DNA from: Gnetum montanum
Lineage: Eukaryota > Plantae > Gnetophyta
Assembly (NCBI GenBank): GCA_015680685.1
Contig: MNCI01002045.1
Span: forward strand, 281,249 to 345,248
Direction: 5' to 3'
DNA: 64,000 bases
Shown: piece after piece, positions 2,636 to 64,000 of the stretch
Layout of the letters: every line of letters starts with the position of its first letter
Position numbering within the stretch: the first letter of the stretch is position 1
Program-made: the position numbers and the translations under genes
The notes under the pieces: generated by a model
What the model was told of the DNA's origin: nothing
Database searches by the model: none
The model's input: only the letters and a program-made list of their open reading frames with translations

Positions 2636-2636
2636 T

Positions 2637-5839: not shown

Positions 5840-6030
5840 AAATTCCTAAAAATTTCAAACAAGCACTTCGATAAAAGATTACTAGTTAATGCACAACCAA
5901 CCAAACCTTACCATGAATCTAGAACGGTCAATGCATACAACACATCGGAGATAGGACAACCTCGCTCATTATTTCGAATCTTCTCCTTTCAACTCAGTCA
6001 TGGGGGAGATGGCCACCTATGCTGATCATT

Positions 6031-11000: not shown

Positions 11001-13790
11001 AATTTTGTCCAATCATTTCTAGGACATGTGAAATATTATTAGTGATTTATACCACACTTTTGTAAAATTGTCAAACCATTGCATACATTTTTGAAAAAGA
11101 AAACCAAATTTCAATGGACTTCTAAATATGAAGAGGCCTTTTAAACTTTGAAAAATAAAATTACTTTGGCCCTAATCATTCGTAGCCCTAACTGGGATTA
11201 CCCATTTGATCTTATGTGGGATGCAAGTGATACTATCATTTGTTATATTTCATGCATACTAGACCATGTTCAAATGAATTATACAATCATTGAAAAAGAA
11301 CTTTTTTCAATAGTCTTTACCATGGATAAGTTTCGACATTATTTAGTAGTCTACAAGACTTGAGTATATACAAATCATTTAGCAATTAAGTTCTTAAGAA
11401 TAAAACAAATTAAAAATGCATGAATTATGCAATTATGTTTACTCTTATAGGAGTTTGACATTCAAATCTTAGATAAGAAAGGAAATGAAAATGTAGTAGA
11501 TGATAACCTATCATGTATTGATCTTCCCCAACAACATCAAATTCCAAGTGAATTTACAAATGAATCCCCTAATGAAAAAATTTTTACAACTAGACATCAT
11601 GACCCATGGTAAACCAATTATGCAAATTATCTCACAATGTTACTGATGAGTGGCGAGGTACCCCTACACTCAACCATACAAATACGAGCGTTTCACACGC
11701 GATCCGGTCGAACTCCGCAGACGAACTAGTTGTGGCACCTAGACAGTTATCCTTAGGTCGCAGTTCGCTGTCTTCCCACCTGGACTAGTGTTATATTTGT
11801 CATGTATGGTTTAGTCCAGATGAGGTGTATGATATGTTCCTAATTCTAACGCTACTCCTGAAGGCAGAGGAATGTAATATTAACTAAGCTAAGCTAGGAG
11901 GAAAAGGGTAAGAAAATCTAATCTAGCCTAAGTGCGACGAGCAATCGATTCCTTGATCAACTATACACATCTTAGACCTCGTGCACGTCTACCACAAGGA
12001 TTACCAAGCGCAGATCCTAGGTACGCCACTGGGCTACCAAGTAGTCACACTTAAATGCTCGAAATCAAGTCGTACTCGTTCCACGTTGCGATGATTAACC
12101 GATTCCTTAACTAACCATACACATCCTTAGATGCTCGTAATCAAGTCATACTCACACCGCATTCTAGGAGTTTAAGGGTGAGAGAGAAAGCAGTAAATAC
12201 AAATTAAATAACAAAGTGACTGCTACAATAATGAAGTAATCTCGATCTTTATTGCCGATCATGTGCGTGTCCAAGTACGTCACACTCGAATAAGACACCG
12301 TACAATCACATTCACCACACTACGGGCAGACATGGGAAACATAATCTATCTTTGGAGTGGTCAAACTGCCAAAGCTTCGCTACTCTAACTCCTAATACCT
12401 AAAACTGGGAAAGCCACCTCTTATTTATAGAAATTGCGGCGCACTACGATATCGTGTACACGATATCGCAGGGACGACGCGATATCACGGCTGTTGCAAT
12501 ATCTCAGCTACTGATACAACAAGGTTGATATATCATGGCTGCGATATCACAGCCAACAAATTCATGACTCATCAGTTACAAACACCATCGGCATGGTCTC
12601 ATGTAGAAAAATGCAATTTCTTTCAAAAAGTTAAAAATTACATTTGGTCCAAACTCTACTTATACCGTAAATATATCGATAATATATCTCATAGATGTGT
12701 TTCAAAATGGGAGCATGTTGATATCCTTAAAAATCCTACCATGAGGGCATTGCAAATGCTTACTTTGATGTAAAATGTATAGAAGTAAAAGTATTACACT
12801 GTGGTTTTTCTTGGCCTACTTTCTTTAAGGATTCCACATCCTATGTTTGATCTTATAATAAATGTCGACAACTAGGTTAGGTATCTAAACGTGATGAAAA
12901 ACCTCTTAATCCAATTTCAATCTCGAAGCTTTTTGACATATGGAGTATTGACTTTCTTGGTTCATTAACCCCATCCTATGGTTGCTAATACATTTTGGTT
13001 TGTATCGACTACATTACCAAATGGATGGAAGCCAAAACAACTCCACATAACAATGTAAAAATGGTGATTTCCTTCTTTAAGAAATATATTCTTCAACTTT
13101 TTGGACTACCTAGGATTTTGATTAGTGATCAAGGTACACACTTTGTCAATAAATCCATGAAGGATCTCATGAAATCTTGTGGGATAAAACATAAGATTAC
13201 TAGCTTGTATCATCCATAGACAAATGGATAAGCTGAAAATACAAATTGGTCTATAGTATGCATTGTCAATAAGATTGTTATCACTAAGAAAATAGACTAG
13301 GAAAAATGATTAAATGTTGTCCTATAGGCATTTTGTACCCCTTGGAGTCCTAGCTTAGGATTTTTACCTTACCGGTTGGTCTACGGAAAGAAATGCTTGC
13401 TACCAATTAAGATTAAATACCAATCCATTCAATTATCAAAAGATATTGGTCTTTATGAGAAATTAAATATGACAACCCATATACAACAATTATATGAACT
13501 TGATAAATTATGAACTAAAGCTATTGATAAACAATGTATTATCAAAAAGCAAAAAAAACCTTTGCCATGCTAAGTTCATTTTCCATAAAATTTCCATAAA
13601 ACTTGCAACTAAATGGGAAGGATCCTATGTTGTAAAAGATGTTTATCCAAATGGAAATTTTCATATTCAGAATCTCAACCATAGTGAGGAGCCTTTTATA
13701 ATTAATGATTAGTGTCTTAAGTTCTATAATACTCCTCATGATAAACTTGAAGAAGAATGATCACTTAGTGATCCTAACTACATTACATAA
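8003..13790 (+). pseudogene. Degenerate gag-pol of the Athila-type element
   Basis: gag FPEFHGTNDED..LTLRDKANFWL; PR HALLDLGISINI (~9540); RT SDWVSP..RICIDY..RKDHFPF (10420-10540); RH NYTIIEKELFSIV; INT CIDYITKWMEA..ISDQGTHF..SLYHP, KWEGSY. Confidence 0.9.
11644..12574 (-). mobile_element. Solo LTR, family A (subtype 2), inserted in the RH-INT linker
   Basis: TGATGAG...CTCATCA termini, TSD GTTAC (11639-11643 and 12575-12579). Removing it rejoins PW*TNYANYL..KVKNYIW. Confidence 0.95.
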
Positions 13791-24819: not shown

Positions 24820-25630
24820 TGATGAGTGGCGAGGTACCCCTACACTCAACCATACGAATACAAGCGTTTCACGTGCGATCTGGTTGAACTCCAAGGACTA
24901 AGTGCTTACACGCCCTAATGGAACACTTAAGGTTAATCAATCACTGTCTTCCCAAACTTACATGTATTGTCACGGTTGTATGGTTAAGTAAGCTTGAGGT
25001 ATATGATTTTTATGTCTTTTATCTTTTTAATGTCTTATGCTAATAGGGGAAGGGTGAAGAGACTAAGTAACTAACTTTCATTAACTATTCACTAACTAAG
25101 TTCTAATTGTCCTAGCACCAATATAAGTTCCCACTTGCTGCACACACCCTAAACTAGTGCAATGCTGTTGGGATTACCAAACACTACTCGTTACTGGGTT
25201 ACCAAGCGTTACACACATGCTTGAAGCGGTCGTACTAAATGCACTTAACTAGGAGAGTCAAGGGTTGAGAGAGACTGATTATCTAGGAAAGCATTTAAAC
25301 ATTTAACAATAATTAAATCCTATTTAGCTTAGTCCATATGCTACAAGGTTTATCAAAAAGTTCATCTTTATTGCTGTACACAAATGTGTGCTCGGGTACA
25401 ATTTGCTCGAATAAAGATCCGTTCACTTTAAGACTCCTACTGCAGGCACATGGAAATTATTCTAACTCTGGAATGGTAAAACTGCTATAGTTTGGCTATG
25501 GTCTAAGTCTAAGTGTCTAGAACAGGGAAAGCCGCCTTTTATTTATAGACATTGCAGCAAGCTGCGATATCACGTACACAATATCGTAGGGGCAGACGTG
25601 ATGTCACAGATGCGATATCACAGCTCATCA
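24820..25630 (-). mobile_element. Solo LTR, family A (subtype 1), inserted in the Tekay RNase H
   Basis: TGATGAG...CTCATCA termini, TSD CTTGA (24815-24819 and 25631-25635). Reverse-complement match to 1823-2635. Confidence 0.95.
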
Positions 25631-34330: not shown

Positions 34331-34466
34331 AGAATGAAAAGGGTGGGTTGTTAAGTGGATAAAAGCCCACAAACTTTATTAATACAATAATATAATGATC
34401 ACAATGCTCAATGCCTAATGTCATGACCAAGTAAGAATTATCTTTACAAGTTTTTAGAATTGCAAA

Positions 34467-34974
34467 TGTAACATCTTATCCTCTATTAAGGGTGGAAACA
34501 ATTGTAAACAATGTAATTAACCTTCAGAACGAAGGGGCACCTCATTGTGACGAGTTACGATTATTCATGTATCCCTCAAGAAATAGTTTGAACTATGTCA
34601 TTTAAGGCCAAGGTTAGAGGTCATTCTAGGCATTAAGCTGTGGAGCCATGAGAGGTAAGTAACAGGAGTTGGATGAAGCAAGATAAGAAGAGATTGATCA
34701 CCCCTTCGGTAGGATAGCCTAATCGTGGTGGCAATGTGGATTGCCTCTAAGGCTAAGTGGCATGAAAAGATAACCTAGAGGACATTATAGTACTCTTTTC
34801 TATTAATAAAATTTTTCTATTTTCCTCTTTTCATTCTTCAATACCAATTATTTAATTACTAGTTTATTCATTTATTAAATATTTATAATGTTTTCAGTAT
34901 ATTATCTAAGAAAACAATGAATGTAATAAATTAAGTGAACGTATTTTTACGACATCTGAGAATGAGATGTCACA
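34467..34974 (+). repeat. 5' LTR
   Basis: TGTAAC...TGTCACA termini; colinear with the split 3' LTR. Confidence 0.9.
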
Positions 34975-34976
34975 TT

Positions 34977-34988
34977 TGGTATCAAAGC
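34977..34988 (+). promoter_or_regulatory. PBS (tRNA-iMet)
   Basis: TGGTATCAAAGC, 2 nt after the LTR. Confidence 0.9.
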
Positions 34989-35212
34989 AAACCATAATTC
35001 AGGAACAAAAGTGGAAGAAAAACCTTATTTTATTATTATTGTTATTATAGAATACAAGTACATTTAGGCAAAATAACAAAAATGGAAGAATATTATTTTA
35101 TTTTTTTTATTCTGTAACAAAGAAGTGAGAGGAAGTACATTTAAGCAGGATATAGAAAAGGAAGAATAGGGGAAAAAGCAGAATGGGAAAGATGTAAAGA
35201 AAGCAACTGTGA

Positions 35213-37397
35213 TTATTTGTTATGACCTAACAACTCAAGGATATCTATGAGTATCTTCAATTGTGATTCCCTTTCTTCAATAGTGGCATCAATCTTACTG
35301 AGCACTACCTTGCATTTAGCCAATCCGTCACACAATTGTTTGATGTACTCAATCGCACGTCTTGCTATAGTTGTTGATTCCTCTTTTCTTTTAAGTCAGG
35401 TCTTCAACATATCCATCTGTATTGATCGATCATCCATGTCCTTTTATCATTCCTTCTCCTTTCTCTATAGAAACAAGATTTAAATTATGAGTTATAAGCA
35501 AATCAACAAAAAAGGTGGAAGCATCAAGAATAAAAAAAATATTACTTGAAATCTATCATTATCAATTTGGAGGAATCGTTCACAAGTCTCCAGATGGCAA
35601 GCGTACCATGTTGCACTCTCCAATTCTCCTAAGAGTTACTCTAGATTTTTTATAGCATTTGGAGCATCCTCAAGAATTCGATACAAAGATGATAGAACTC
35701 AAACCTACATTAAATCATAATATACCTTAAAATTGCATAACTAAGACTCCCATAGATGATAAACACTCTCATGAATATAATAGGGTTTATTATCAAAAAT
35801 TTGTTGACTAATACACCAAAGAAGCACAAGTTCTTCTTCAGCAGTTGTCACTATCCTTCTCATTGAATAAAAAGATCCTAAGATAGAGAAAGAAGAAACC
35901 ACTAGAGCAAAATCAAAAAATGCTGTCAATGCTACCTATGGAAGGGAACCTCTTCCCAAGTGTCATAGAAAAAGAAGGCATGCCTAGTGATCTAGGTGGT
36001 GGAATGGGAGTCTGTTCGGAAGTGGCACCTATATCATCTCTGTCAATCTCTCGGATAAAGTACTGGCGCTCCATAAACCTCTGCAACACAAAAATCAACA
36101 TCATACAAAGGAAAGAGAGAAGTATTCAAACCTTGAAATAATTAAAACTTGCCTCTAGTTGCTTTCCTTTATCTGTTTTTGTACTTTGTCAAGTTTGTTG
36201 GGGTTTTTGTTGAGCCTGTTGTTGGGCTTGTTGTCTTATAACTATTGGATCACTAAGACTTTGCCTAGTACATTGCTTCTGTAAAAAAAAATCTATTAGA
36301 AAAAAATAAGACGTTAAATAAGTTATTGTGTATATATACATATTTATATTTAAATATATACCATTGGAGTAGAAAAGATGATCTGTTCTTGTGGTTGAAT
36401 TGTACCAAAGATTGAAGTACCTTGAATTTCTTCAACCTGTGCAACTCCAACACTCTACATTGGTTCATTTTGCAATCCAAATTGCACTATCAAATACATA
36501 AAATAAAAACATAATCAACAACAAGGAAATAATAAAAACGTGAAAATACCTTATTGATTTCCTCCTAATTCTGAACATATTGTAAAGCCAGTTGACCTTT
36601 CTCGACACCTATAATCTTACTCCATATAACTCTCTCATCTTCGAGAAATTTAGGGCATAACCAAGGATTGTAACGGCTAAAACATTTTTTTGGATGATTA
36701 TAACTTAGGATCATACACATGAACAAGGGTACACAACATAGGGTATAAGATTTGGAAGGATTTTGATGGGCAACAGTAATTTCAATCATGGCATTATACC
36801 AGGCAAAGAAATAAGACAACGACCAGTCATAAATTCTACTGATTATGGCATCATGAAGTATGAAAATAGAATAAGAACTAACCTAACATTGTTGTCTATA
36901 CCACAAAACCTTGTTACTAATAAGTAGACATAAATCAAAGTGAGCCTCATTAATGAAATCTCCACAAACATATTAACTTTTTCCAAGGGCAGAATCAATA
37001 ACATAATCAGATAATTCCTTTTTGCAAAAAGATTTAAATTTTGGGAAATAAGTTGAAAGAATTAAAGAATTTTCTCCTTGTTGAAAACCTAAGGTTGCTT
37101 GAATATCAAAAAGAATGATTGTTATTGCTCCAAAAACTAAATGAGAAATATAAATTTTCTTACTATTATACTATTCACACCATTCCATAAGAACGCCCTT
37201 GCAATGGGAGAGTTTAAAAATAGGAAAAACAAGTAAATTAGTTAACCTAGAAGTGGTAAGGTATTAGAAACCATCCTTCCCAAATAAGCTACGAACATGA
37301 TCAGAAGCAAAGAGCACATTATTCTAATGTAAAATAATAGTGGAGATTGACAGTTACCTAAAGGAGTTTAAGATAAAGCTTAACACTTGGGATCCAT
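35213..37397 (-). pseudogene. Decayed multi-exon antisense accessory gene in the retrotransposon leader (transposon-protein-like N domain, Q-rich linker, coiled-coil C-terminus)
   Basis: ATG at 37397, minus-strand TATAAATA at 37505-37512. Short AT-rich introns at 37289-37357, 36487-36549, 36279-36361, 36081-36152 (GC donor) and 35465-35545. Last exon 35213-35464 is 84 codons. Some exon phases are unresolved. Confidence 0.7.
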
Positions 37398-38069
37398 GAT
37401 GAAGATGGTTAGAATTCTTTGATAAAAAAAAAAAAATTCAAGCTTCTCTTCTATCAATCTTTTGCTGATATTGAGTTGTGATGGGCAAGTTATCCTTCTT
37501 ATCATATTTATAATACAATCATAAAAATTTTAGTAAAAGCGAAGAGAAAGTTATAACTTATTATAACCAAATATTTAATAAAAGCTAACATATACTTTTT
37601 TAAAGAAAAAGCTAATGTTTACTTTTTATTTTTAAAAGCTAGCGTTTACTTTTTTAGATTTTATAATTTCTACGTTCACTAAAATGAAATTATCTACAAT
37701 TTAACTTAAAGTGCTCTCTAAGATAATTCTAATGGTATTAATTTCATCAAAATTTGACTTATAGTTTAAAAGATACAGTAATTCTTGGGTTATCTGTAGT
37801 TTTAAAAATAAAAAATTAATTTAAATGATTTTTTTAATTTTAAATTTTAAAAAAGAGGGGATGGGGTGCAAGAGGTCTCGGGCTCAAACCCAAGTCCTAA
37901 AAAATTGTATATGAAAAAAATTTATTAATAATAATAATGATGATGAATGTTTTTGGAGGGCTATAAGCCCTTGGGAGGGCCATGATGGGTTCGATAGTCG
38001 TCGCTTGTTGTTAGCTTGTGACCAACAACTATGTATGGATTGGCCCTTAGGCTAGCCCCAAGGACAATC

Positions 38070-38560
38070 CATTGACCACACTTGCCTTCTGCACCGTGTT
38101 GCACTGCCTGCCTCTGCACTGCCCACCACCACATAACACTACGCCACCTGCCACCAGCAACTATGCCACACCTGCCTTTTGCTGCCTACTGCCATGCCTT
38201 GCCGCACCTATGCCCTTTTCCATTAGTGGCTACGCCACGCCTATGCCTTCCACTACCACACCACATCTACGCCTTCTGCCATTGTGTTGTGCTTGCATCT
38301 ACGCCTACCGTCGTGTCATGCCTACCACTACTACTACCACACATGCCACTACCTACCTACCTACCGCCTATATGCTACCTGCCACTCATAACCGCTTCCA
38401 GCACCACTAATAACCACCTTCAACACTATCGATAACCACCTCCAGCACCACTGATAACCACCTTCAACACTGTCGATAACCACCTCTAGCACCACTGATA
38501 ACCACCTCCAGCACCACTTATAACTGCCTTCAGCATTGTTGATAACCACCTCCAATGTTG
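38070..38560. repeat. GCCAC/ACCACC low-complexity array followed by a ~42-bp (20+22) tandem repeat
   Basis: ACCACTGATAACCACCTTCAACACTGTCGATAACCACCTCTAGC-type units at ~38403-38555. GCCAC/TGCC motifs are dense at 38070-38400. Confidence 0.85.
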
Positions 38561-39088
38561 TCGAAAATCACCTCCAACGCTATGCAAAACCACCTCTTTA
38601 GACACTACCAAAAAGCTGCCTCTCCACGCTCAAGCCCTGACAAGGGCTACATAGGCTCTGAAATGGGCCACATAGGCCCAATCAAGAGCCACACAATCAT
38701 TGAAACGAATCATGCAAACCTACTCAAGGGTTGCATTGGCCCTAACATGGGCCATGTCAGCCCATGACAAGGCTGCGTGGACCTCGAGGTCAACCGCATC
38801 GACCTAGAGGAGGACCACGGGGACTACGCAATGGGCCATGCCAGCTCAGAAGAGGGTTGTGTGGACCCTAGAACAGGTTGTCTTCCATCAATAGATGGGA
38901 AAATCAAATTTCCCGACAACTAATGGAAATTTCAAATTTCCTGATAACTAACGAAAATTTTGAAATTGCCATCAATGGACAAAACAAATTTTTTTAAAAA
39001 AATTTCACCTATAATTGTTAATTTAAATTGAAAATGCACTAAATTATTTTCAAAAATTTGAATTGGCACCTTGGTAATAAGGGGGATA

Positions 39089-39155
39089 AAAACTTCATCA
39101 TTAAGTGCGCACATTTTGAAGTAGAACTAGAATGGGTGACCTCTCAGAAAATCTT
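39089..39155 (+). promoter_or_regulatory. 5S rRNA-derived internal control region (A-box/IE/C-box) upstream of gag
   Basis: Gapless by-eye alignment to the recalled plant 5S sequence AGAACTCC...GGAAGTCCT gives 42/67 overall and 22/24 over AGTAGAACTAGAATGGGTGACCTC (39120-39143). Confidence 0.8.
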
Positions 39156-39468
39156 GAAAAACGTGCAAGTTTTGTAAAGTTAAAACAACTATAACTTTTG
39201 AATCTGAAGTTCCTTTTCAACCAAACAAAAATCGATTCCAATAGATTTGAACCTTCTAAACTCAATGGAACTATCAAATTTAGTTGGATTATAGAAAATT
39301 AGCATTTAATTCATTACTTCAAGTCCCAAAAACAATTAGGATGTGGTACTCAATAAGAAATCCATGATAGTTTCAACTTCTTCTGCAATTAACTAATGAT
39401 TTTGAATCCCATAAAAAGGGCAATAAAATCTAAAGATTACCAACATATCTGATTTCTTTAACTTACCA

Positions 39469-42400
39469 ATGTCTAGAACTCAAAGAATAAATTGGAAAGA
39501 AATGGAAGGCCAAGTTAATGACTGGATAAATGCCCTTGAAGATCAAATTAATGAGATTAGGGTTGTTAAAAAAGAACTTTGTCACTCAAACCAAGGGTTC
39601 AGGACAGAGATGCAAAATATGTCTGAGGAAATTAGGAAATTATCCCAAAGTTTAAAGGATAAATGGTCAGACGTGCAAGGAAAGATAGATTCCTTTGTAG
39701 ACTCCATCAAGCAATTAATCGANTTATCTCATTATATTTAAGAGGATTTGCGGCAACATGGTAAAATGGATTGAGATCTTAAGGTTTGATTACAAATTGA
39801 CTTAATTTTTGTTGAGATTTCGAACAAAAATTTGTTTCTGATTCCTTTCTCAAAGAGCGCAAAATGAGATTTGATTCCTTAAGGTTGGGAATATGATCCG
39901 TAGATGATTATACAAGCAATTCTGTGTTCTTTCTCGATATGTAAGTTATCAAGATGAGGGAGAATTAACTTCAAAATTCATTGAAGGATTACATGCTCAA
40001 CTACATCCCCAAACACAAGCCCATAATCCTTAAACCATTGATGAAGTATATAGAATTGCTAAGAATTATGAGGAATCAAATCAGATACAAGCTACCCTTC
40101 GATAAGAAACTCTTCGACAAGCTACCTTTTCACAAGCAACAGTAAAACACCAACCAAAAGAGGTCAATCAGGATCAAGATGTTTCATTTATGGCGAAGAT
40201 CATTTCAAACAAGATTGCCCAAAATTTTGAGCAAAAATACAAAGACCAACCAAATCAAGAATCAAAAACCCAACCCAAATGTGAACAAAGGAAAAATTCC
40301 AACCACCACCACAGTTGTGAAGAAGATATCTACATCAACTAAATCAAGGTTGTGTAAATTTCAATTTACTTTACTGATTTTTGAAGGTTCAATTAAAAGT
40401 AAACAAATTGAATTTTTGATTGATAGTGGTGCTAGTGATAACTTTATTTCTCCAAAGTTAATTAATTTATTAAAATTAAGTTTACCTTTCAAAAAAATTA
40501 TTAAGATAGAATTAGTAGATGGAACAACTGTGAGCAAGCATACCCGATATGGAGAAATTAACTTTACCTTGCAAAACATGTCTTTCATTGATGAATTCTT
40601 TGAATTTGAACTAGGCAATGTTGATGTAATTTAGGAATGTCTTTCTTGCAAAAATTTGATATTACTGCCCACTTTAAAACTCGCATTTTAAAAGTTCCAA
40701 TCACTGACAAAGTTAGGATTCTAAAGGAGGTAGGAATAGTAAAGCAAATTCATACGATAACTATTAAGAAAGCTAAAAGATTAGTCAAAAAAGGTGCTAC
40801 AATGTTGGTTGTCAAAGTAACCCAACTTCAAAGATCTTCAGGTATTGAGATTCCAAAAGAACTTAAGGAATATAAAGATTTAGTATTTGGTGAAACTAGA
40901 GAACTACCTCCAAAAAGAACTGTCAAGTATGCTATTGATATTTTTCCTAGTACACATCCTGTTTCAAAAGCCCCTTATAGATTTTCTACTTCTAAATTAA
41001 GAGAATTAAAAGTACAATTAGACCAATTATTGGAAGAAGAGAAAATTCGACCTAGCGCATCACCTTAGGGTGCATTAGTCTTATTCGTTAAAAAGAAAGA
41101 TGGTACACTAAGATTATGCATCGATTATAAAGCATTGAATAAAGTGATGATTAAAAATACTCATCCTTTGCCTAGGATCGATGATTTGTTTGATCAACTT
41201 ACGAGTGGATGTTATTTTTCAAAGATTGATTTAAAATCAGGTTATCACCTAATAAGGATCAAGCAGAAAGATATTGAGAAAACTACTTTTAGAACTAGGT
41301 GTAGGTTACACGAATTTGTTGTGATGTCGTTTGGATTAACTAATGCACCTGCAACATTCATGGCATTAATGAATAATATTTTTCATGAATATCTTGATCA
41401 ACTTGTTATAGTATTTATGGATGATATAATTTATTTATTCTAAGTCAAGAGAAGAACATGCCAAACATTTGAAAATTACAATAGAAATTCTTAAAGAGCA
41501 TCAGCTGAAAGCTAGATTGAGTAAATGTGAACTTTTTAAGGAAGAAGTTTCATACTTGGGTCATATAGTTTCTAAGAAAAGATTGCAAGTAGATCCAGCA
41601 AAAATTAATGTGATCCAGGACTGACCTGAATTAAAAGATGTTACAGTGGTTTGTAGCTTCTTGGGTTTAGTTGATTTTTATTAACGTTTCATTAAAGATT
41701 ATTCTACCTTGGTAGCCCTATTGAATGACCTTTTGCAGAAGAAATGTGTGTTCAAGTTTGATGAAAAATGCAAGGAATCTTTTCTCAGATTAAAGATGCT
41801 ACTTGCAATAGCACCTATTTTGAGAATTCCGAATGAAGAATTACCGTTTGAAGTATCCACGAATGCTTGTGAAATATGAATCAGTGCAGTTCTTTCATAA
41901 GAAGATAAAGTAGTATGTTATGAATCTTGTAAATTACGAGGAGCCGAGGTAAATTACTCAACCCATGATTTAGAATTACTATCAATTGTTCATGCTTTGA
42001 AAGTTTAGAGACATTACCTTTGCAAAAAAAGGTTTGTATTAAAAATAGATCATAAAAGTTTAGAATATTTGCAAAGACAGCCTATTTTGAAGATTCGTCA
42101 AAGGTGATGGGTAGAATTATTGGTTGAATATGATTTTAAAATCAAATATATTCCTAGTAAGAAAAATGTGGTAGCTAATGTCCTTAGTCAAATGTATAAC
42201 TTAATGATAGGTGTGGTAACGATCCCCTATGAAAGAAGAAATCAAGGAACAAATAAAAAAAGAAGATCCTTATTTTAAAAATATTTTAACCAATATTTCC
42301 TACGAGCCTTGATATCAACTTACCTCTAATGGGTTATTGATGAAAGGACAAAAAATGTGCATTCCAAAAGGAAATTGGAGACTAAGGTTGTTGTGTAAAG

Positions 42401-43629
42401 CACACGAAGTACCATACACAGGACACCCAAATTATATTAAGACCTATATGATAATTGGAAAATCTTATTTTTGGCCTGGAATTAAGAATGATGTGTCCTC
42501 GTACATTAAAAATTGTCCAATGTGCCAAAGAATAAAAGCTAAATAGAGGAAACCCAATGGATTATTACAACCTATGGAAGTCCAACGTGGAAATGGGAAG
42601 ATATCACTATGGATTTCATTATGGGATTGCCAATAACCAATAAGGGAAATGACTCAATTTTCATAGTGCTTGACTATCTATCAAAGATGGCACATTTTAT
42701 AACTTTGAAATCTACAAACACAGCAAAAGAAGTAGCCCAAAATTTTGTATGTGAAGTATTTCGATTGCATAGTTGTCCAAAATCTATCACCTCAAATAGA
42801 GATCCCAAGTTCATATCCGAATTCTAGAAAAATTCTTCAAAGAGCTTAGAACCCAATTGAAATTTAGCACATCTTACCACCCTAAGACTGATGGACAAAC
42901 TGAACATGTTAATAGAATATTAGAAGATATCCTTAGAAGCTATGTTGGGAATAGACCAAAAATGTGGAAGAACTATTTGCACCTAGCAGAATTTTCCTAT
43001 AATAATAATTATCAAGGTTTTATACATGGAACACCATTCAAAATAGTAAATGGACATAATTGTCGTACAGCACTAACCTAGGCAAATCCAACCTTAAGAA
43101 CAGAATGGAAGGAAGAAGAAATAAAAATAATGGAAAAAAATGTCACAAAAGTAAAACAAAATTTACAAGCTGCCCAAAATAAATATAAAGGATATGCAAA
43201 TCAACATCGACTTAAAAAAAATTCCAAGTAGGAGATCAAGTATTACTAAGAGTAGAACCTACCAAAAGTTCTCTTAAACTGGGAAAATATACTAAATTGG
43301 CATCTAGATTTTGTGGACCTTTTAAAATCTATGAAAGAATTAGCGAAGCAGCATATTGATTGAATCTTACAGCAACCTTAAAAACTCATCCAATTTTTCA
43401 TGTAAGCTTGCTAAAGAAATTTCATGAAAATGATGTACCATATGTGCTAGATTGGAATACCTTGACATTACAATCCAATGCTAGCTTTGAAGTTAAACCC
43501 ATTGCTATTAAGAACCAATGAATCAAGAAATTACGAAATAAAACTATCAACAAAATACTTGTTCAATGGTCAAATTGTGCTCAACAAACTTGTAAAAACA
43601 AGGAATTTATTTTAAATACTTACCCCTAA
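39469..43629 (+). pseudogene. Degenerate gag-pol with chromodomain
   Basis: gag with coiled-coil N-terminus; PR LIDSGASDNFIS; [30 protein letters not shown]; RH NYSTHDLELL; INT H..GH..CPMCQ, MDFIMGLP, YHPKTDGQTE, GPF; chromodomain ..KILVQW. Confidence 0.95.
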
Positions 43630-46600
43630 CTTTTTTATCATTATGATATTAAATGATAAATTGTATTTGTTATAGATGTAATAAATTATGTTTTATAATT
43701 TCTGATCTTCTACTTGTATAGGTGATAATGAGGAAAATAAAAGAATCGAAGCTAAGGAGCATAACGATGAAGCAACAACTGAGTAGCTAAATATAAAGGA
43801 AATGCTCAAGGACAAGCTAAATGCCCAAGGGGGTAGATTGTAATGTCTCGTCTCCTATTAAGGGTGGAAAAAAATTGTAAACAATGTAATTAACCTTCAA
43901 AAAGAAAGAGAACACCTTGTTATGACAAATTATGATTATTCATGTATCCCTCGAGAAAGGGTTTGACCTAGGCCATTTAAGGCCAAGGTTAGAGGCCGTG
44001 CAAGGCATGGACTTGTAGAGCTAAAAAAACAAGTAATGGGAGCCAGGTTGATGAGTGGTGAGGTACCCCTACACTCAACCATACGAATACGAGTGTTTCA
44101 CGCATGATCCGATTGAACTTCGCAGACGGGCTAGTTGTGGTATCTAGACAGTTACTCATAGGTCGTAGTTCGCTGTCTTCCCACCTGGACTAGTATTATC
44201 TTCGTCATATATGGTTTAGTCCAGAGTGAGTTGTATGATGTGTTTCTACATTAGTACTACTCCTGAGTATGATGGAAAATAATATTAATTAAACTAGGGG
44301 AGAGAGAAAGAGAGAATCTAACTAGCCTAACTGCGATGAGTATCTGTTCCTTAATCATCCGTACACATCTTGGACCTCATGCACGACTACCACTAGGATT
44401 ACCAAGTGTATGGCCTAAGTACGCTACTGGGTTACCAAGTAATCACAATTGAATGCTCGTGATTAAGTCGTACTCATTCCGTGTTTAATAGGAGATAAGG
44501 GTGAAGAGATATTAACTAGGAAAGCAGCAAATAACAATTAAATAAATAATTAAGCTAAGTGGATGCTGAAGTCATCTCGATCTTTATTGCTGGTCATGTG
44601 CATGTCCAAGTACGTCACACTCGAATAAGGATGTCGTACAATTACAATCACCACACTGTGGACATGCACTGGGAGGAAAGGGTTGAGAGAAATCTAAACT
44701 TAAAAACTTACAATAAAATCTAAGAACTAATGCTTAGAACAAGGAAAGCTGCCTCTTATTTATAGAAATTGAGGAAGGTTGTGATATCGTGGGGCAGACG
44801 CGATATTGTGGCTGTGATATTAGGGGTTCGATAACTGGGCCTGACAGACCATATCTTATATCAGGTCTCCGATAACAGGGCTCCGATAACTGGGCCTGAC
44901 AAACCATGACTCATCATACCCCCACGACTGAATGAAAACTCGTCCTCGAGTTAAAGTGAGAATAGGCTCCATTGATTACACAGTGGATAGGTATGGGACT
45001 ATTGACTAACTAGAATGAATTCATGCCGTAGTGTGAAGGCAGAACAAAATTGAGACACAACACAAAAGAAAATCCTATGATTACAAAATTTGATGGAACT
45101 CATATAGTTCCTGGTGGCAGTGGCTCCTCCATGGGTGTCTTTCCCTTTTCTTGTGCTCCAAGTCTTGGGATTTGATGGCGTTGAAGTATGGCCTGGATTT
45201 TCTCCTCTTGTAAGGCCTTGAGTGCCTTNGAGGTGATCCCTAACGGCCTCTGGAGCAAATTCTGCGAAAGGTACAAAGTTTAATTCCATGATCACTATAG
45301 TGAATATGGACCTTTCATGGATGGTTTGAACACAATCCTGGGGCAACGTGAGATATCATCCCTATTCAGACATTGCAGTAGCTCCTCCTTTTACCTACCT
45401 TGATTGTACAGTGGCAGGGTCTTGTCCTTCACCTCTGCTAGGTCATTTGATCGCACCTTGAGCAATACCTTCCTATTGTTTGCGTTTTGGGACCATCTGC
45501 AATCACATAGGGCCAATCGTTAGTAAGGTTGTTACCAAAGTTAGGTTATACCTTACTACTTGCCTTAATAGATTTACTTTATTTCCGTGTGATGTTAATT
45601 ATTGGAAGAACATGTTCCCGAATGATTATAATGTTGAGTCGTCTTTGCTTAGGTGGTTTTCAAATTTAATTTTCTAGTATAGCTAAGGGGATGAAATTGT
45701 TTTTGGCACATTTTATTCTTAATTTTACAACTAATTACTCTAAAATATGTCCTTTAGGCAATGATGAATTTCAAAAAATTTATGCGCTATTCAGCATGTG
45801 CCCCTCCCCCACGACTAAGTTGAACACTCCGAGTTCAAGTAGGTTTAGACAGAATGAACATCGAAGTAATAGTGAGCAAGATATAGGTATAAAAGCAAGG
45901 GTCTCACAATCGCAAGTCATAGAGAAAAATTCAAAAAACTCCCCCGCCTAAATAGTGGAAAATGATGGTAAGTGTTGCGGGGGGATCACGTATATATATT
46001 TTCATCGAAGTTAGGGCACTTAGAGAATGTACCGAATTTTTAATATATATATATATATTTGAAATTAAACGATGTAAACTAAGGACATCTGGATGATTGT
46101 TAAAGGGTTCCAGGGTAATTCAACTAGTTCTGAAGGCACGAAAATTATGATGGTGTGGAATTTATCAATAAGGAAAGCGGATGATAAAGAAAAAGGCTAT
46201 GTGATGGTTCATGGGAACATTGAATCAAAGGGATAGTAATAAAGGAAAGAAAATTATTGGCAATATGCTAAGGGTAACAGATGAAGTGCGAAAGATGGGT
46301 CATGAGTGCAAATTACAAAAATTACACAAGTGGGTCCTCCCCAAAGCAGGTTCCAACCTATAATGCCCTTGCGTAACCACACTTAAAAGTGTCTCTGGGC
46401 ACTCAAAGGGTTAAATGTAATCCGCACTGGTTCCACAAAACACACGCATGTAAATACCACCGGGATGAGGTAAGAATTCTATGCTATACAAGACACGAGC
46501 TACAATCACATGAATAGCGAGATGAAACGGAATATAGAAAGGATTGTAGAGATTGGAACATGAGGTAACTGACTCAGGGCACAATGAATCCTGCATGTAA

Positions 46601-47187
46601 AGCATGATTAATGTGTTATTAACCCGTTGTTCCAAGATCAGGACCAAGTTCATTCCTCTGACCAGTGACACCGCATTGTTTCATCCCATGATGAGCAACT
46701 ATAAGAGTACCAGAACAACAAGGCCTACGATCACTTGGCATTTTTTTCAAGGGAGAAGTGATTTTTGTTTTGTGGCACTTCATTTTTTTTTCCTCTTTCT
46801 TCTCTTTTTTTTCGATTGTTGAATCCAGAGAAGCCACCAACCTTCAAGCATGGGTGCATGTCTTTCCAATGGGACCCCCTAGAACAGCATTGGATTTTTG
46901 AGTGCCTTTTGATTACTCTTACTCCCATTTTTCATTAGATATACAAGGATCTTAGTACAACCACGTTGCATGATAACTCTCACAAACGTCACAAAAGAGA
47001 ATCTCTAAGTCCCCTTGATGTCACACCCTAATCATTCCCTCTTGGTCCATCCTTCTTTATTCTGGGTACAATAAACACAAAATTAATTTTAAGATGTCAA
47101 AAATATCACTGTACCCTCGAATAGAACCTCTTATTTGTAGAGTGGATGAGTGGGTGTAATGGGCTCACTATCCAAATAATTGATCAC

Positions 47188-47342
47188 NNNNNNNNNNNNN
47201 NNNNNNNNNNNNNNNNNNNNNNNNNNNNNNNNNNNNNNNNNNNNNNNNNNNNNNNNNNNNNNNNNNNNNNNNNNNNNNNNNNNNNNNNNNNNNNNNNNNN
47301 NNNNNNNNNNNNNNNNNNNNNNNNNNNNNNNNNNNNNNNNNN
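47188..47342. other. Assembly gap (N)
   Basis: Run of N. Confidence 1.
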
Positions 47343-47423
47343 CATTGGGGTTCACACACTTGATTATAGTAAGCATAGTGGGGCAATTTGTAAGATGTAG
47401 TTCTTGGGTAAAGAGTTGACCCA

Positions 47424-49191
47424 CTATGATGTTTGTGAATGGTATGCAAGGATTGGGATGTCGCTCTCCATGGTTGTATTCATTGGACCGTATGGTTGTT
47501 GGAGTGTTAATTGGTGGCCCTGATGAAGTAACATGAGGCGTTGGGTTCGAAAATAAGGGTGCACCACAGGGTTGGACTTGTGCTGAGTTGGAGAATCTAG
47601 TGGCCTTGGAATTGTGTTGTCCCTTCCTAAGGTCATTTCTAAAGAAGGGACACCTTCAATGTTGTTGAGGTCTCTCACTGCCGTTGGCAATCGTAGCACA
47701 AGTAACGTTCAGGAGTTGTTGTGGTGCAGATACCTTAGGAACAGTTGGTGGTGATGTAGAAGGAGGGAAAGGATGAGAATGTTGAAAATTAGGAGAAGTG
47801 TGCGGCACACAAAACGATGGTTGTGTTGAGGACATGGGCTAATAGTATTGAGGAGAATGATAATGCGGTGAGATAGAGTATGTTGGCTCAGTTGGAGAAA
47901 CAGGGTATTGGACTATATAAGCATTTGGATTCGGATGATATGAAAGGTGTCTCCAGTTTAGGGGTGGCTTCCCCCATGACTAGGATTGTTGCCACTGTGA
48001 TCGAACACAGTATCTCTGTACGAACTTGGGATGTAACGTGCTTCCCCAATGCTCATATAAATGTAACAAGATTGGGCATTGGCCCTTGGGATAATCGTAT
48101 AGGCAAATGTTGCATTCATACGTGTGATTGGCAGTTGATCTCTTATTTTCCTTATCCCTTCTTTCCGATTGTCTAATGATACTTTGTCCTGCTTCTCGGG
48201 TTGTCAAAACTCTATCTCCAATGATATCGATATATTCTCCACACTTTTTATGCGTCCATTCCAACATCTTATTGATCTTTGCCTCGACTTCCTCTAACAA
48301 TTGTTGTATCGGCAAAAATGGTTCTTTCCTCTTATGGTAATTCAATTTCTCCTTTTTGTGATTATGGACCTTTTGTTAAGTTGAGATTTTGGTCCCGTTG
48401 ATGTTTTTCAACACTCTCCCATATAGCCATTTCTCCTTCTTCTTTTGCTACCCACTTAATAAGCTCCTGGACTTGATGAGTTTGTAGTTCGTATATTTGT
48501 CCTTGGGCATACATCCCTAGGGTCTCTCTTGTTTCATCACGAAGCCCATCAATGATATGGTACATTAGCCTTTCTTTGGAGAACTTATGGCCTGGATAGT
48601 TGTTTAATAGTGCATAATATCTTTCTAAGGCCATGTCCATATTGTGCTTGTTTCCACTCTTGGATTTGTTTCCTCAAGGCTAACACTCTTACATAGGTTT
48701 GATATCTTTCGTTAAAAAGTTCTACCATTGTTGGCCAATGTTGTATTGAATTTGGTTTTAATAATCGATACCATACTTTTGCTTGGCCAATGTGTCATAA
48801 GGAAGAGCTTGAGTTTTTGCCAACCGTTATCAATGTTGTTCCATGCATAGGCATCGTAGAAGGCTTGTAAATGTTGATGCAGATCTAAGTCAGCCTCCTG
48901 AGAAATTAGGAAAGTTGTTTAAATCGAACCTGGGTAGACAGCTCTCTTTACGATGCCTATGGGAGATTCGAACAGCCTCTTGTATTTGTGTTAGGCTTGT
49001 AGTGGCCAGTAGGGGTTCATCGTCTTCAAGTTATGCTTTTGTGTGTTGGGACGATGTTGCCTTCGTTTATGTTTATAAAAAACCCCCACTTCAGATTGCG
49101 TACGACAACCTTCATTATCAAATAATTCATTGGTTCTCCAATGAATTGCCTCACTAAATGTGGCATTATCATAGTCTTGTAGGAGAGGCAT
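47424..49191 (-). pseudogene. Degenerate gag of the family A element
   Basis: Retrotrans_gag-like AKVWYRLLKPNSIQHW..ALERYYALLNNYPGH..IIDGL. Knuckle CNICLYDYPKGQCPIL is homologous to CEICQYKHPKGCCPII at ~4400. Confidence 0.8.
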
Positions 49192-50759
49192 GATTGTGAA
49201 ACTGTGTGTGAATTTGTATGTGACTTTTTGTAATTACTTCTTAAAAAATATATCGTTAATTCCTATACAACGACCTTGTATGATATAACTAATCTAGATA
49301 ACTAACACCATCCCTGACAACGGTGCCAATGATGAGTGACGAGGTACCCCTACACTCAATCATACGAATACGAATGTTTCACACACAATCCGGTTGAACT
49401 CTACAGACGGGCTAGTTGTGGTATCTAGATAGTTACTTGTAGGTCGCAGTTTGCTATCTTTCCACCTAAACTAGTATTAACTTTGTCAAGTATGATTTAG
49501 TCTAGATTAAGGTGTATGATGTGTTTCTACACTAGTACTACTCCTGAGTATGATGGAAAATAATATTAATTAAACTAAGGAAAAAAGAGAGAGAGAATCT
49601 AACTAACCTAAGTGCGATAAGTATCCGTTCCTTAATCATCCGTACACATTTTGGACCTCGTGCACGAATACCATTGGGATTACCAAACGCATGGCCTAAG
49701 TACACTACTGGGTTACCAAGTAATCACATTGAATGCTCGTGATTAAGTCGTACTCATTCCGCGTTTAATAAGAGATAAGGGTGAAGAGATATTAACTAGA
49801 AAAGCAACAAATAACAATTAAATAAATGATTAAGCTAAATAGATGTTGCAATGATAAAGTAATCTCGATCTTTATTGTCAATCATGTGTGTCCAAGTACG
49901 TCACACTCAAATAAAGATGTCGTACTATTACAATCACCACACTTAAAAGAAAGGGTTGAGAAAAATCTAAACTTAAAAACTTACAATAAAATCTAAGAAC
50001 TAATGCCTAAAACAAAGAAAGTTGCCTCTTATTTATAGAAATCGAGGCAGGCCAAGATATCGGGGGTAACTGAGCCTGACAAACCATATCTTGTATCAGG
50101 GCTCCAATAACTGGGCTCCTATGACTGGGCCTAATAGACCATGACTCAGCACAGGTGAAGTGGGATAAGAAAAAACTGATCACCATGGTGGTAGTGCTAA
50201 ATTGCCTCTAAAGCTTAAATGGCATGGGTTATAAGCATGGGAAAATAACCCAAAGGGCATTACAATACTCTCTTTTATTAATAAAATTTTTCCGTTTTCC
50301 TCTTTTCATTCTTCTTTTACGACATCTGAAAACAGGATGTCACAGAAAAAAGCATAGTGCAGGAAGTGCACTCCCATTGCCCTAAAACTCAAAGTCAATT
50401 AGCAAATCGTGATAAAATTTTGCAGAGATGAATAAACCTTTAAAGTTAGTTGTTCAGTCCTTACATGGACTCATTTTTATTTTACAGAAGATATTTAAGT
50501 CCTCCTTAATTAAGAATTGAACTTGCATCTGCCATTCTGAAACGGCTGGCAGAAACATTAACATCGGTGAGAGTATACAATTTTCAAACAAAATATCCGT
50601 AGTAAATAAAATCATTAACAAAATTGGAAACATGCGGCGTCAAAATACAAGAGTAAGAACGGAATCCAGAAAAGAGATTGCCTCATCCAAATAAATAACC
50701 ATCACAGCAAATGAACACCATAATCAACTATAAACATTTTCCAGTCTAAAACTCTGCAA

Positions 50760-62475: not shown

Positions 62476-64000
62476 TGATGAGTGGCGAGGTACCCCTACA
62501 CTCAACCATACGAATACGAGCGTGTACGTGTGATCCGGTCGAACTCCGCAGACTAAATGCCTTAACGCCACAAGAAANNNNNNNNNNNNNNNNNNNNNNN
62601 NNNNNNNNNNNNNNNNNNNNNNNNNNNNNNNNNNNNNNNNNNNNNNNNNNNNNNNNNNNNNNNNNNNNNNNNNNNNNNNNNNNNNNNNNNNNNNNNNNNN
62701 NNNNNNNNNNNNNNNNNNNNNNNNNNNNNNNNNNNNNNNNNNNNNNNNNNNNNNNNNNNNNNNNNNNNNNNNNNNNNNNNNNNNNNNNNNNNNNNNNNNN
62801 NNNNNNNNNNNNNNNNNNNNNNNNNNNNNNNNNNNNNNNNNNNNNNNNNNNNNNNNNNNNNNNNNNNNNNNNNNNNNNNNNNNNNNNNNNNNNNNNNNNN
62901 NNNNNNNNNNNNNNNNNNNNNNNNNNNNNNNNNNNNNNNNNNNNNNNNNNNNNNNNNNNNNNNNNNNNNNNNNNNNNNNNNNNNNNNNNNNNNNNNNNNN
63001 NNNNNNNNNNNNNNNNNNNNNNNNNNNNNNNNNNNNNNNNNNNNNNNNNNNNNNNNNNNNNNNNNNNNNNNNNNNNNNNNNNNNNNNNNNNNNNNNNNNN
63101 NNNNNNNNNNNNNNNNNNNNNNNNNNNNNNNNNNNNNNNNNNNNNNNNNNNNNNNNNNNNNNNNNNNNNNNNNNNNNNNNNNNNNNNNNNNNNNNNNNNN
63201 NNNNNNNNNNNNNNNNNNNNNNNNNNNNNNNNNNNNNNNNNNNNNNNNNNNNNNNNNNNNNNNNGCACTATGCATGTCGCGTCTCATCATACCCCCATGA
63301 CTGAATGAAAACTCATCCTCGAGTTCCTTACAATGATATCAGGTAGGTATGGGATTATTGAGGGGAATGGAACTAATGGGATGACATGTGAACGGGTCTT
63401 TATTACAAGACTTGACAAAACTGGTGTTCATGACAACAAGGGTGAACACCTTATTACAATGACATCAGGCCACATTTGGTAGCTGAGAGAAAAGAGGAGA
63501 GAGAATAGAAGAGAAAAAGGGAGAAGAGTCTTACTGCTGCCAACTCCTAGATTGCGCCTTCCGTTGTCCATCCGTAAGCGCATTATACATTCTACTCCTT
63601 GCATAGTTGCTTCAGTGTTGTTCCATTCCAAGTGTTTGCGCCAGATCCATTCCGGTGTTGTATGATTACCATCTACACACAAAACACAATCATATATTAG
63701 CAAGGTAATTGAATCATTAAGTGAATAATACCTTGCTTCGGTTTAGGTTCATTGGCTAGGTTGTGGTATGGCTGATATGGATCTGGGAAGATGTATATGA
63801 TGACTACCGAAGGTGTAGGGGTTAAGAAGAAAAACGAAAAAATCCGGGGCATAGGAGAAAAATCAAAAAATCAGGTCCTGTACCCCCATGACTAATCACG
63901 AACCTCCAGTAGCGTTAGAATGGAGAAAGAAAAGGAGTAAGAAAGATAGGTGAAAAGGGACAACTATGGCATCAGTGAAGTGGATGTCAAGATGGAAATG
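62476..64000 (-). mobile_element. 3' end of a family A element (3' LTR 62476-63289, PPT 63290-63303), continuing beyond the window
   Basis: TGATGAGTGGCGAGG...CTCATCA then TACCCCCATGACTGAATGAAAACTC, as at 44917. Confidence 0.85.
62578..63264. other. Assembly gap (N)
   Basis: Run of N. Confidence 1.

Follow-up and report, generated by a model that had tools for sequence, protein, structure and literature searches.

The window, by which we mean the whole 64-kb stretch of DNA analysed here, contains a complete and old chromodomain Ty3 retrotransposon at 34467-50344, the LTRs of which are about 81-87% alike. The element has the following parts.

34467-34974, plus strand: 5' LTR, TG..CA, which aligns with the 3' LTR
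34977-34988, plus strand: PBS TGGTATCAAAGC of the tRNA-Met type, read from the sequence
37513-39468, no strand assigned: rest of the leader, with short tandem arrays (22/44/66-nt units at 38382-38596, among others)
39469-43626, plus strand: decayed gag-pol, from Pfam matches and frames
43839-50344, plus strand: 3' LTR, interrupted at ~44046-50162 by a nested LTR element

The 5' LTR matches the 3' LTR at 81% over 43839-44021 and at 85-87% over 50235-50344, and the 5-bp flanks of the element are GCAAA and GAAAA. The PBS shares 11 of 12 positions with the usual tRNA-Met PBS. The content of gag-pol is, in order, a coiled-coil gag start, a CCHC knuckle, PR, RT, integrase and a chromodomain-like tail. 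Pfam matches in pol were RVP/Asp_protease, RVT_1, Integrase_H2C2 and rve; the tail (...KILVQWSN...), located after the integrase, was read by eye and has no Pfam match. By its sequence features (the PR-RT-INT order, the tail as read by eye, the LTRs, the PBS and the target-site flanks) the host can be classed as a chromovirus. An iMet-primed chromodomain Ty3 host had been proposed in a first, sequence-only reading of the locus, and the PBS, Pfam domains, tail, LTRs and flanks bear this out. The dominant primer of chromoviruses is tRNA-Met (PMC6317226). Rfam gave no relevant family over 33-46 kb, Pfam gave no matches on 10 long ORFs elsewhere in the window, and a homologous-protein search with the host protease piece reached no sister elements.

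The leader of this element carries open blocks on its minus strand that can be assembled into a gene model. The features of the model and its surroundings are listed in the direction of the putative transcript.

37505-37512, minus strand: TATA-like motif TATAAATA, 108 nt upstream of the ATG
37324-37397, minus strand: proposed start, uncertain, with the ATG at 37397-37395 and a 63-nt GT..AG gap at 37386-37324
36550-37323, minus strand: first exon (E1), a well-supported coding remnant of 258 codons in a single frame with 5 stops
36487-36549, minus strand: candidate intron I1, 63 nt, AAG/GTATTT...TGATAG/, 79% A+T and 62% T, with two in-frame stops
36421-36486, minus strand: candidate exon E2, 22 codons, stop-free, from the sequence
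36279-36420, minus strand: candidate intron I2, 142 nt, GT..AG, from the sequence
35936-36278, minus strand: candidate exons E3 and E4 with a 51-nt gap between them, no Pfam match
36278-36132, minus strand: candidate exon E3, a Q-rich linker with DKGK and 1 stop, no Pfam match
36080-35936, minus strand: candidate exon E4, stop-free, no Pfam match
35878-35935, minus strand: candidate intron I3, 58 nt, GT..AG, 50% T, picked under all three free-intron scoring schemes
35546-35877, minus strand: candidate exon E5, 4 stops, no Pfam match on its pieces
35465-35545, minus strand: candidate intron I4, 81 nt, GT..AG, 54% T, with 3 in-frame stops
35213-35464, minus strand: last candidate exon E6 (35464-35216) with TAA at 35215-35213, no Pfam match
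35097-35111, minus strand: two AATAAA motifs, from the sequence, possible poly(A) signals in a U-rich 3' UTR ~100 nt past the stop codon

E1 is the firmest part of the model. The open pieces at 36976-37170, 36886-36972 and 36568-36882 share one minus-strand frame, which extends to 37323-36550 and is interrupted by stops beginning at 37266, 37173, 36975, 36885 and 36567. Over 37263-36550 this frame has 4 stops, against a mean of 17.1 in shuffled sequences, and none of 2000 shuffles was as low. The other five frames across the E1 region have 10-29 stops. The stop deficit of E1 is far beyond chance and is confined to one of the six frames. The peptide strings quoted in the first reading were all found on the minus strand. 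The last in-frame stop of E1 looks decayed and lies 15 nt before a good donor site.

The beginning of the model is uncertain. The TATA box placed at 37505-37512 by the sequence-only reading exists as a motif, but about one match to TATAAATA is expected by chance in a leader of 65% A+T, as estimated from base composition. The ATG proposed as the start is also present at 37397, but it opens only five codons before a stop in this copy, and its frame, past the gap at 37386-37324, joins a frame different from that of E1.

Downstream of E1, the exon blocks chain with consistent phases through GT..AG gaps, and zero frameshifts are needed. The candidate introns are 63, 63, 142 (or 83), 51, 58, 69 and 81 nt long. 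The strongest minus-strand U-rich islands fall on five candidate gaps and on the 3' UTR, and I1 is the strongest of the region. The gap between E3 and E4 (36131-36081) is an in-frame, U-rich GT..AG gap of 51 nt. An alternative donor of I2 at 36361 gives the 83-nt length, but the frame is then broken in this copy. Three of the four E5 stops lie inside an alternative 69-nt GT..AG gap at 35766-35698. E6 has 3 stops near its start, followed by 60 open codons (35395-35216) that are helical and heptad-like. The Q-rich linker with DKGK and the helical tail described earlier are thus both present on the minus strand. At least five short introns had been claimed as well. As phased, U-rich GT..AG gaps they are there, but no RNA read supports any of them, and on the sequence they are plausible as candidates.

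The free-intron search scored 344 on the minus strand and 215 on the plus strand, and shuffled sequences scored 202 ± 42 (maximum 303); flexible splicing strips many stops even from shuffled sequence. In the region of E3/4, E5 and E6, one plus-strand frame has as few stops or fewer. Because a plus-strand frame has fewer stops there, E6 is only probably coding on the minus strand. Introns of 51 and 58 nt are short for plants. Two DNA contigs skip 36012-36089, a piece with minus-strand GT..AG ends and short flanks. It was set aside as an intron, since it matches no intron of the model, its flanks are short and the intervening part was labelled 'between: not known'.

Splice joints or covering reads over the segment were looked for in three RNA runs at 80% likeness, and none was found among scattered partial reads. 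The runs sampled were two oligo-dT runs, of which 26% each was read, and one other run, of which 2% was read. The minus-strand spliced reads that had been suggested as a check of the model were thus absent from these three partly sampled runs. The search was limited in its sampling, and the gene copy at this locus is dead. Some of the partial RNA reads fall on A-runs or on a 5S-like block and are artefacts.

These results leave room for a simpler gene. E1 might be a single-exon reverse extra ORF of ~260 codons like those of Tekay elements, in which case the introns, the Q-rich linker and the coiled-coil tail would be over-read from a non-coding leader. The strong non-randomness is limited to E1, and the plus-strand frame does as well or better in the three downstream regions. 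Shuffled sequences attain 60-88% of the observed spliced score, two of the gaps have the short lengths mentioned above, and no splice joints appeared in the three RNA runs. The survey of Tekay elements counted continuous ORFs of >=250 codons only (PMC6317226). E1, with 258 codons, would just reach this threshold if open, but it has 5 stops in this dead copy. Several features speak against a lone E1: the phases agree across all gaps with zero frameshifts, the U-rich islands lie exactly at the gaps, and a clean 60-codon tail frame ends ~100 nt before an AATAAA. Such an ORF would also have no 3' stop of its own, except the decayed-looking one 15 nt before the donor. We consider it unlikely that the gene consisted of E1 only.

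Whether the segment is part of the chromovirus family was assessed by its copy number. In a DNA run of a related genome (run X1), the summed depth was 1100-5300 over the gene region, 2900-11500 over the LTR and 4100-7400 over gag, and a near-identical single-locus contig had a depth of ~9. Each listed variant site in the gene region was represented by 46-96 distinct contigs. Compared with gag, the gene had about half the depth and half the number of variant contigs, and both values were similar in parts of the LTR. The divergence of sister contigs from this copy is 13-19%, close to that between the two LTRs. The segment is therefore high-copy at a level comparable with the LTR and gag of the element, and probably not a one-off capture. 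Judging from depth and from the one copy read, it probably belongs to this LTR family; no contig of run X1 was found that joins the gene with either the LTR or gag. Over the rest of the leader (37513-39468) the depth in the same run was 13-343, being low in the middle (~37.9-39.0 kb) and rising again from ~39.0 kb. In addition, 46 family contigs depart from the sequence of this copy just past the PBS, at 34995, so that part of the LTR-sharing copies may carry a different leader.

It is also conceivable that the segment is a piece of some other repeat, either a transposon gene or a once-captured gene, which landed backwards in the leader and has no role in the chromovirus. Any abundant repeat would be high-copy, and the 46 contigs diverging straight after the PBS and the collapse of depth at 37.9-39.0 kb, between the gene and gag, would be understandable under this explanation. 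We assign it a low probability. The segment is not bounded by TIRs, LTRs or flanking direct repeats, none of which was found at its borders; TIRs or a TSD of its own had been named in the first reading as the mark of an independent insertion. No transposon domain occurs in any leader frame, and no annotated plant protein matches. The depth, variant-contig number and divergence of the segment are near those of gag and the LTR. Moreover, it neatly fills the leader from just past the PBS to the TATA-like motif.

The gene has decayed in this copy. Its stop load is 10-13, against ~7.7 new stops expected from 10% neutral change, and pol has at least 11 breaks against 12.4 expected under the same decay. 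Such a number of stops is compatible with an originally open frame that has changed neutrally to the extent that the LTR divergence implies, and pol behaves alike; the earlier view that the gene decayed alongside gag-pol agrees with this. The related claim, that most stops are deaminated CAA, CGA or CAG codons, failed at the sole stop that could be checked. The stop at 36885-36883 is private to this copy, and most family contigs differ from it at the last letter of the codon and not at the first. No second copy of the leader or of its peptides was found in the 64-kb window or in 120 loci fetched for the comparison described below.

The product has no recognised relatives in the collections searched. 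The exons were searched one by one, and for profile tests E1 was read through its stops with X. Pfam-A gave no family at E up to 10 on 19 stop-free pieces from both leader strands, and these pieces contained no transposase, RT or other transposon domain in any leader frame. A phmmer search with a 105-aa piece against 1.84 billion protein representatives returned 0 matches, and a control search indicated that the parent protein collection is rich in plant proteins. Since no annotated plant protein matches despite this plant-rich collection, the segment is unlikely to be a conserved host gene. Two pieces had no match in the protein Atlas or in a PDB sequence search, and no related loci were found in viral and metagenome contigs. 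The AlphaFold model of the 105-aa piece alone was unusable, with a pLDDT of 54.

Likeness to PMD, Transposase_32 and DUF1985 proteins had been suggested by the sequence-only reading. As a PMD reference, 120 plant loci were fetched by motif pattern and ten were verified with Pfam. The ten control ORFs from these plant contigs were recognised by Pfam PMD at 1e-15 to 1e-74, whereas the stop-free exon pieces had no match to PMD (PF10536) at E up to 10. Transposase_32 (PF20167), DUF1985 (PF09331) and Transposase_28 (PF04195) had no Pfam match on any piece scanned. E1 scored -0.4 bits against a 42-sequence PMD HMM (rank 113 among 1564 decoys) and -3.9 bits against a 147-sequence PMD HMM, both inside the decoy range. 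A weak resemblance remains in the N-terminal part (P ~0.01-0.05). hhalign placed HLVFGAITIILFDIQATLG on the PMD hallmark motif FHLPvGEMTITLdDVa.LLgLP with P 0.014 and a probability of 3%, and the invariant G-E-M-T of the motif is reduced to G-x-x-T in HLVFGAITIILFDIQATLG. The whole-E1 hhalign score was 21.3, against 14.2 ± 2.7 for shuffles; this value was reached by 1 of 64 shuffles and by 0 of 64 decoys, and the hhalign probability for PMD was just 1-3%. The second-half PMD motifs, SWGxAxLAxLY and GxxxLLQ, were left unaligned by hhalign in local and alternative alignments, and an alignment by eye gave few identities. E1 was rejected as a PMD domain on the Pfam result, on the two HMM scores within the decoy range and on the unaligned second-half motifs.

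The sequence-only reading proposed that the gene might encode a PMD-type, Transposase_32-type or DUF1985-type protein that opposes host silencing. The placement on the hallmark motif, the whole-E1 score above most shuffles and the fact that Ogre elements carry PMD in extra ORFs on the antisense strand (PMC6317226, Additional file 4) speak for it, but Pfam is silent where the controls are strong, the HMM scores are those of decoys and the SWG...LLQ half does not align. We regard this explanation as very unlikely, and a nuclear or anti-silencing role of the product is conjectural. That there is no gene at all, and the open stretches arose by chance in an A+T-rich non-coding leader, would suit the lack of a homologue, domain or RNA and the low-confidence fold, but it is extremely improbable given 4 stops in E1 where 17 are expected, a deficit reached by no shuffle and seen in one of six frames.

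We favour, with moderate confidence, the explanation that the segment is a decayed accessory gene of a high-copy chromodomain Ty3 family, located in the long leader and pointing away from gag. The gene would be transcribed from its own promoter within the leader, and the transcript would be spliced and receive its poly(A) tail shortly before reaching the PBS. Retrotransposition would leave the introns in place, since it is the sense strand that is packaged, and there they do not count as introns. The predicted protein, an orphan of ~550-590 residues, would begin with a helical domain of ~260 residues, continue with a Q-rich linker and end in a helical tail resembling a coiled coil. Our guess is that it acts on the transcription or chromatin of the element itself. 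The present copy, inserted long ago, would be dead and would have decayed neutrally together with gag-pol. The fullest form of this proposal, in which a high-copy chromovirus co-amplified a multi-exon leader gene whose antisense position shields the introns and whose orphan product regulates the chromatin or transcription of the element, is tentative and rather doubtful.

Among 782 Tekay chromoviruses surveyed, 12% were reported to have an extra ORF in reverse orientation in their 5' part (Neumann et al. 2019; PMC6317226, Additional file 5). The Tekay ORFs, named eORF-5'R, resemble the gene described here in belonging to chromodomain Ty3 elements that are mostly primed by tRNA-Met, in lying on the opposite strand upstream of gag and in having no recognisable domain. 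The position agrees: the gene (35213-37397, minus strand) lies between the PBS at 34977 and gag at 39469, inside the LTRs. However, the survey gave neither sequences, introns nor function, and the model here has several exons. The host may be a Tekay or a Reina element, and its LTR is only 508 bp long. The arrangement had been called unusual in the first reading. This holds less strongly than stated, as reverse 5' ORFs had already been listed in 12% of Tekay elements. Orphan genes that lie backwards in the leader have received little study, but as a type of passenger they are already on record.

Antisense accessory genes with their own promoter have also been described in Grande and Retand (PMC7264820). 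Grande gene23 of maize, RIRE2 of rice and Retand of Silene share with the present case a family-borne antisense gene with its own promoter and an orphan or poorly understood product, often with tandem arrays nearby (PMC7264820, PMC11963269). Their genes differ in that they are described as continuous ORFs and are located between pol and the 3' LTR of Tat-lineage non-chromoviruses, and introns are not mentioned in the survey of Retand (PMC11963269). In addition, many genes of this type carry Transposase_28, whereas this leader has no match to it. MAIN and MAIL1 are PMD proteins (Ikeda et al. 2017, PMC5418596). The PMD ORFs of Ogre elements are likewise retrotransposon-borne and antisense, and the N-terminal motif found here weakly and locally resembles PMD. 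However, the Ogre ORFs are in 3' position and the present gene is in 5' position, the host lineage is another one, and PMD profiles fail here. A further comparison concerns VANDAL elements, which are Mutator-type DNA transposons. VANC, a protein that these elements encode, acts against the silencing of their own family. The likeness to VANC would lie in the proposed role only; the class of transposon differs, and no sequence or structural link was found.

Plant retrotransposons often carry extra genes, which have hardly been studied, and the published surveys seek only long uninterrupted ORFs. If the spliced antisense leader gene is real, such surveys find too few of these passengers and misjudge their size. 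Accessory functions would then evolve at a second site, the chromovirus leader, in addition to the stretch from pol to the 3' LTR in Tat elements. The family may serve as a test case for whether such proteins aid the element in transcription, in nuclear steps or in escape from silencing.

The segment lies in the leader of a chromodomain Ty3 retrotransposon (34467-50344), the host element, which has the following parts:

34467-34974, plus strand: 5' LTR with TG..CA ends
just after the 5' LTR, plus strand: primer binding site (PBS) of tRNA-Met type, TGGTATCAAAGC
38382-38596 (22/44/66-nt units) and 38895-38960 (28-nt unit): tandem arrays in the leader, adjoining the antisense gene
39469-43626, plus strand: decayed gag-pol frames, from sequence reading and Pfam matches
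43839, plus strand: polypurine tract and start of the 3' LTR
44046-50162, inside the host 3' LTR: nested LTR element of ~6.1 kb, with its own LTRs at 44049-44793 and 49330-50066

The leader measures 4.47 kb from PBS to gag. The gag-pol frames run from a coiled-coil gag start through a CCHC knuckle, aspartic protease, RVT_1, Integrase_H2C2 and rve to a chromodomain-like tail (...KILVQWSN...). The host 3' LTR is interrupted at ~44045, continues from ~50163 and ends at 50344. The flanks GCAAA / GAAAA form a 5-bp duplication with one change, and the insertion is old, since the LTR halves are only 81-87% identical. The two LTRs of the nested element are 86% alike, and LTR fragments related to them occur at 11644-12439, 62476-62553, 24820-24890 and other sites in the window.

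We identified a minus-strand coding remnant in this leader. Its core frame, the first exon (E1, 37323-36550), has 258 codons with five stops, and all peptides quoted by the sequence-only reading were found on this strand. Over 37263-36550 the frame contains 4 stops against a shuffle mean of 17.1 (0/2000 shuffles as low), while the remaining five frames of the stretch contain 10-29. There is no reasonable doubt that E1 is the remnant of a coding sequence. The upstream signals proposed for it fared worse: ATG 37397 opens only five codons and, after a 63-nt gap (37386-37324), leads into another frame than the long ORF, and the TATA box TATAAATA at 37512-37505 is present but not above chance expectation. 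The likeliest reading, to which we give about an even chance, is that E1 belongs to an antisense accessory gene borne by a chromovirus family; this gene would probably be spliced, would have an orphan sequence and would be dead in the window copy.

Downstream of E1, stop-poor minus-strand blocks can be linked through GT..AG gaps, with all phases compatible and zero frameshifts:

36549-36487, minus strand: candidate intron, 63 nt, GT..AG
36420-36279, minus strand: candidate intron, 142 nt, GT..AG (83 nt with an alternative donor)
36131-36081, minus strand: candidate gap, 51 nt, GT..AG
35935-35878, minus strand: candidate intron, 58 nt, GT..AG
35766-35698, minus strand: optional gap, 69 nt, GT..AG
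35545-35465, minus strand: candidate intron, 81 nt, GT..AG
35215-35213, minus strand: stop codon TAA closing the exon chain
35111, minus strand: AATAAA, past the TAA

Plant genes are expected to have U-rich introns, and on the minus strand the most strongly U-rich islands coincide exactly with the candidate gaps and the 3' UTR. The short introns claimed earlier stand as candidate in-phase GT..AG gaps on U-rich islands, with no RNA joint seen in three runs. When introns were placed freely, the minus strand scored 344, the plus strand 215 and shuffles 202 +/- 42 (maximum 303). The minus-strand excess is real, but much of it is owed to E1, and exact splice sites cannot be set by this search. A gene confined to E1 is unlikely. 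E1's share of the score would agree with this, as would one plus-strand frame equally poor in stops over the later blocks; the fit of all phases and the position of the U-rich islands argue against it. Two contigs of the DNA run X1 skip exactly the 78-nt piece 36012-36089, which has GT..AG ends on the minus strand and sits within a proposed exon. Their flanks are short and the content between them is marked unknown; the skip may reflect a deletion carried by some copies.

X1, from a related organism, has 16,897 contigs on 34400-39900 at >= 80% likeness, with these summed depths:

gene region: 1100-5300
LTR: 2900-11500
gag: 4100-7400
tandem-array spacer, 37.9-39.0 kb: 13-343

Because a near-identical contig, probably single-locus, has a depth of only ~9, the gene region amounts to some hundreds of copy-equivalents, a rough figure, as depth is not a copy number. 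Each listed variant site is covered by 46-96 distinct contigs over the gene region, against 80-98 over the LTR and 57-100 over gag, and sister contigs diverge from the window copy by 13-19%. Judging from depth, variant-contig counts and divergence, the segment is probably not a one-off capture; no second copy was found within the 64-kb window. No X1 contig connects the segment to LTR or gag. It is unlikely that the segment came from another repeat, or was captured as a fragment, and does nothing for the host element. The 46 contigs that depart from the window copy directly after the PBS would suit such an origin (they may be subfamilies with a different leader), but no TIRs, LTRs or flanking repeats were found bounding the segment. 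X1 depth over the leader arrays is 10-100 times lower than elsewhere in the element, which marks this spacer as variable or private. Retand elements, too, are described as having arrays beside antisense ORFs. The gag frame of the window copy breaks at a lone N (39723); close by, at 39718, 72 family contigs depart from this copy, probably through a private rearrangement or assembly fault in it.

On the basis of sequence comparisons we class the protein as an orphan. Pfam matched none of the exon pieces scanned singly, and phmmer with a 105-aa piece found no match among 1.84 billion cluster representatives. A control search with a plant protein of the plant mobile domain (PMD) returned more than a thousand named plant proteins, so plant proteomes are present in that collection. 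Protein Atlas and PDB sequence searches and single-sequence fold prediction gave nothing usable. The PMD-type likeness proposed earlier was examined with a degenerate hallmark pattern run over metagenome contigs, yielding 120 loci, in nearly all of which plant PMD motifs could be recognised (10 confirmed as PF10536 at 1e-15 to 1e-74). Read through its stops as X, E1 scored -0.4 and -3.9 bits against profiles of 42 and 147 PMD sequences, both within decoy range. The hhalign program placed HLVFGAITIILFDIQATLG of E1 on the N-terminal hallmark FHLPvGEMTITLdDVa.LLgLP (P 0.014, probability 3%); whole E1 scored 21.3 against 14.2 +/- 2.7 for shuffles, a level reached in 1/64 shuffles and 0/64 decoys. 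The second-half PMD motifs did not align to E1, and with the decoy-range scores this led us to reject the assignment. A PMD or anti-silencing protein is quite improbable, although the two could be very distantly related. Chance without any gene is hardly credible given the stop deficit of E1. Plant PMD exons (e.g. L019:7278-8060, L089:127-975 and L010:12320-13006 among the fetched loci) often stop right after ...LLQ, followed by non-coding sequence; that many end alike suggests that PMD genes have conserved an intron at this point. The JGI metagenome contigs clearly contain much plant host DNA.

Assuming ~10% drift of each LTR from the ancestor, the exon model should have gained ~7.7 stops, against 10-13 observed; for pol the expectation is 12.4, against at least 11 observed breaks. 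Both loads are near neutral expectation, as joint decay with gag-pol had predicted, and fit a frame still open at insertion. The proposal that most stops are deaminated codons did not hold at 36885-36883: this stop is private to the window copy, and it is not the assumed C-to-T event, since most family contigs differ there in the codon's last letter.

Extra ORFs of chromoviruses were reportedly described by Steinbauerova et al. in 2011 as rare and limited to 5' regions of Poaceae elements. Neumann et al. 2019 (PMC6317226) classified extra ORFs by position and orientation. Of the 782 Tekay chromoviruses, 12% carry reverse ORFs in the 5' region, whereas Reina has none (Additional file 5). No domain is shown for the Tekay ORFs, and PMD is assigned to antisense 3' ORFs of Ogre (Additional file 4). 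The arrangement, earlier called unusual, is therefore already catalogued in position and orientation; the multi-exon structure would be new, if true. Vicient and Casacuberta 2020 (PMC7264820) reviewed antisense genes in Grande, RIRE2 and Retand. Some of these have a promoter of their own that drives their transcription, and some encode nuclear proteins; the authors urge that antisense transcripts and spliced transcripts be considered. A 2025 Retand survey (PMC11963269) does not mention introns.

RNA was sampled from two oligo-dT runs (26% of each) and one further run (2%), all labelled with the best-matching species. The 57, 33 and 246 matching reads were nearly all partial. Minus-strand spliced reads, the check suggested earlier, were absent: these partly sampled runs gave no splice joints and essentially zero depth over 35872-37343. 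They lend no support to transcription, yet do not demonstrate silence of the family. In the RNA run X12, 28 read pairs match just the ~35 bases 39120-39155, upstream of gag. Because their flanks read like 5S rRNA (GAACTCCG..AAGCGCGCTTGGGC..), this block resembles part of 5S rRNA; Rfam gave no 5S match on the stretch at E up to 1. In the RNA run X16, three reads cross the LTR end and the PBS and, at 34995, continue for ~30 bases ~75% like the window leader start, so some relatives that share the host LTR and whose leader starts with homologous sequence are transcribed in sense.
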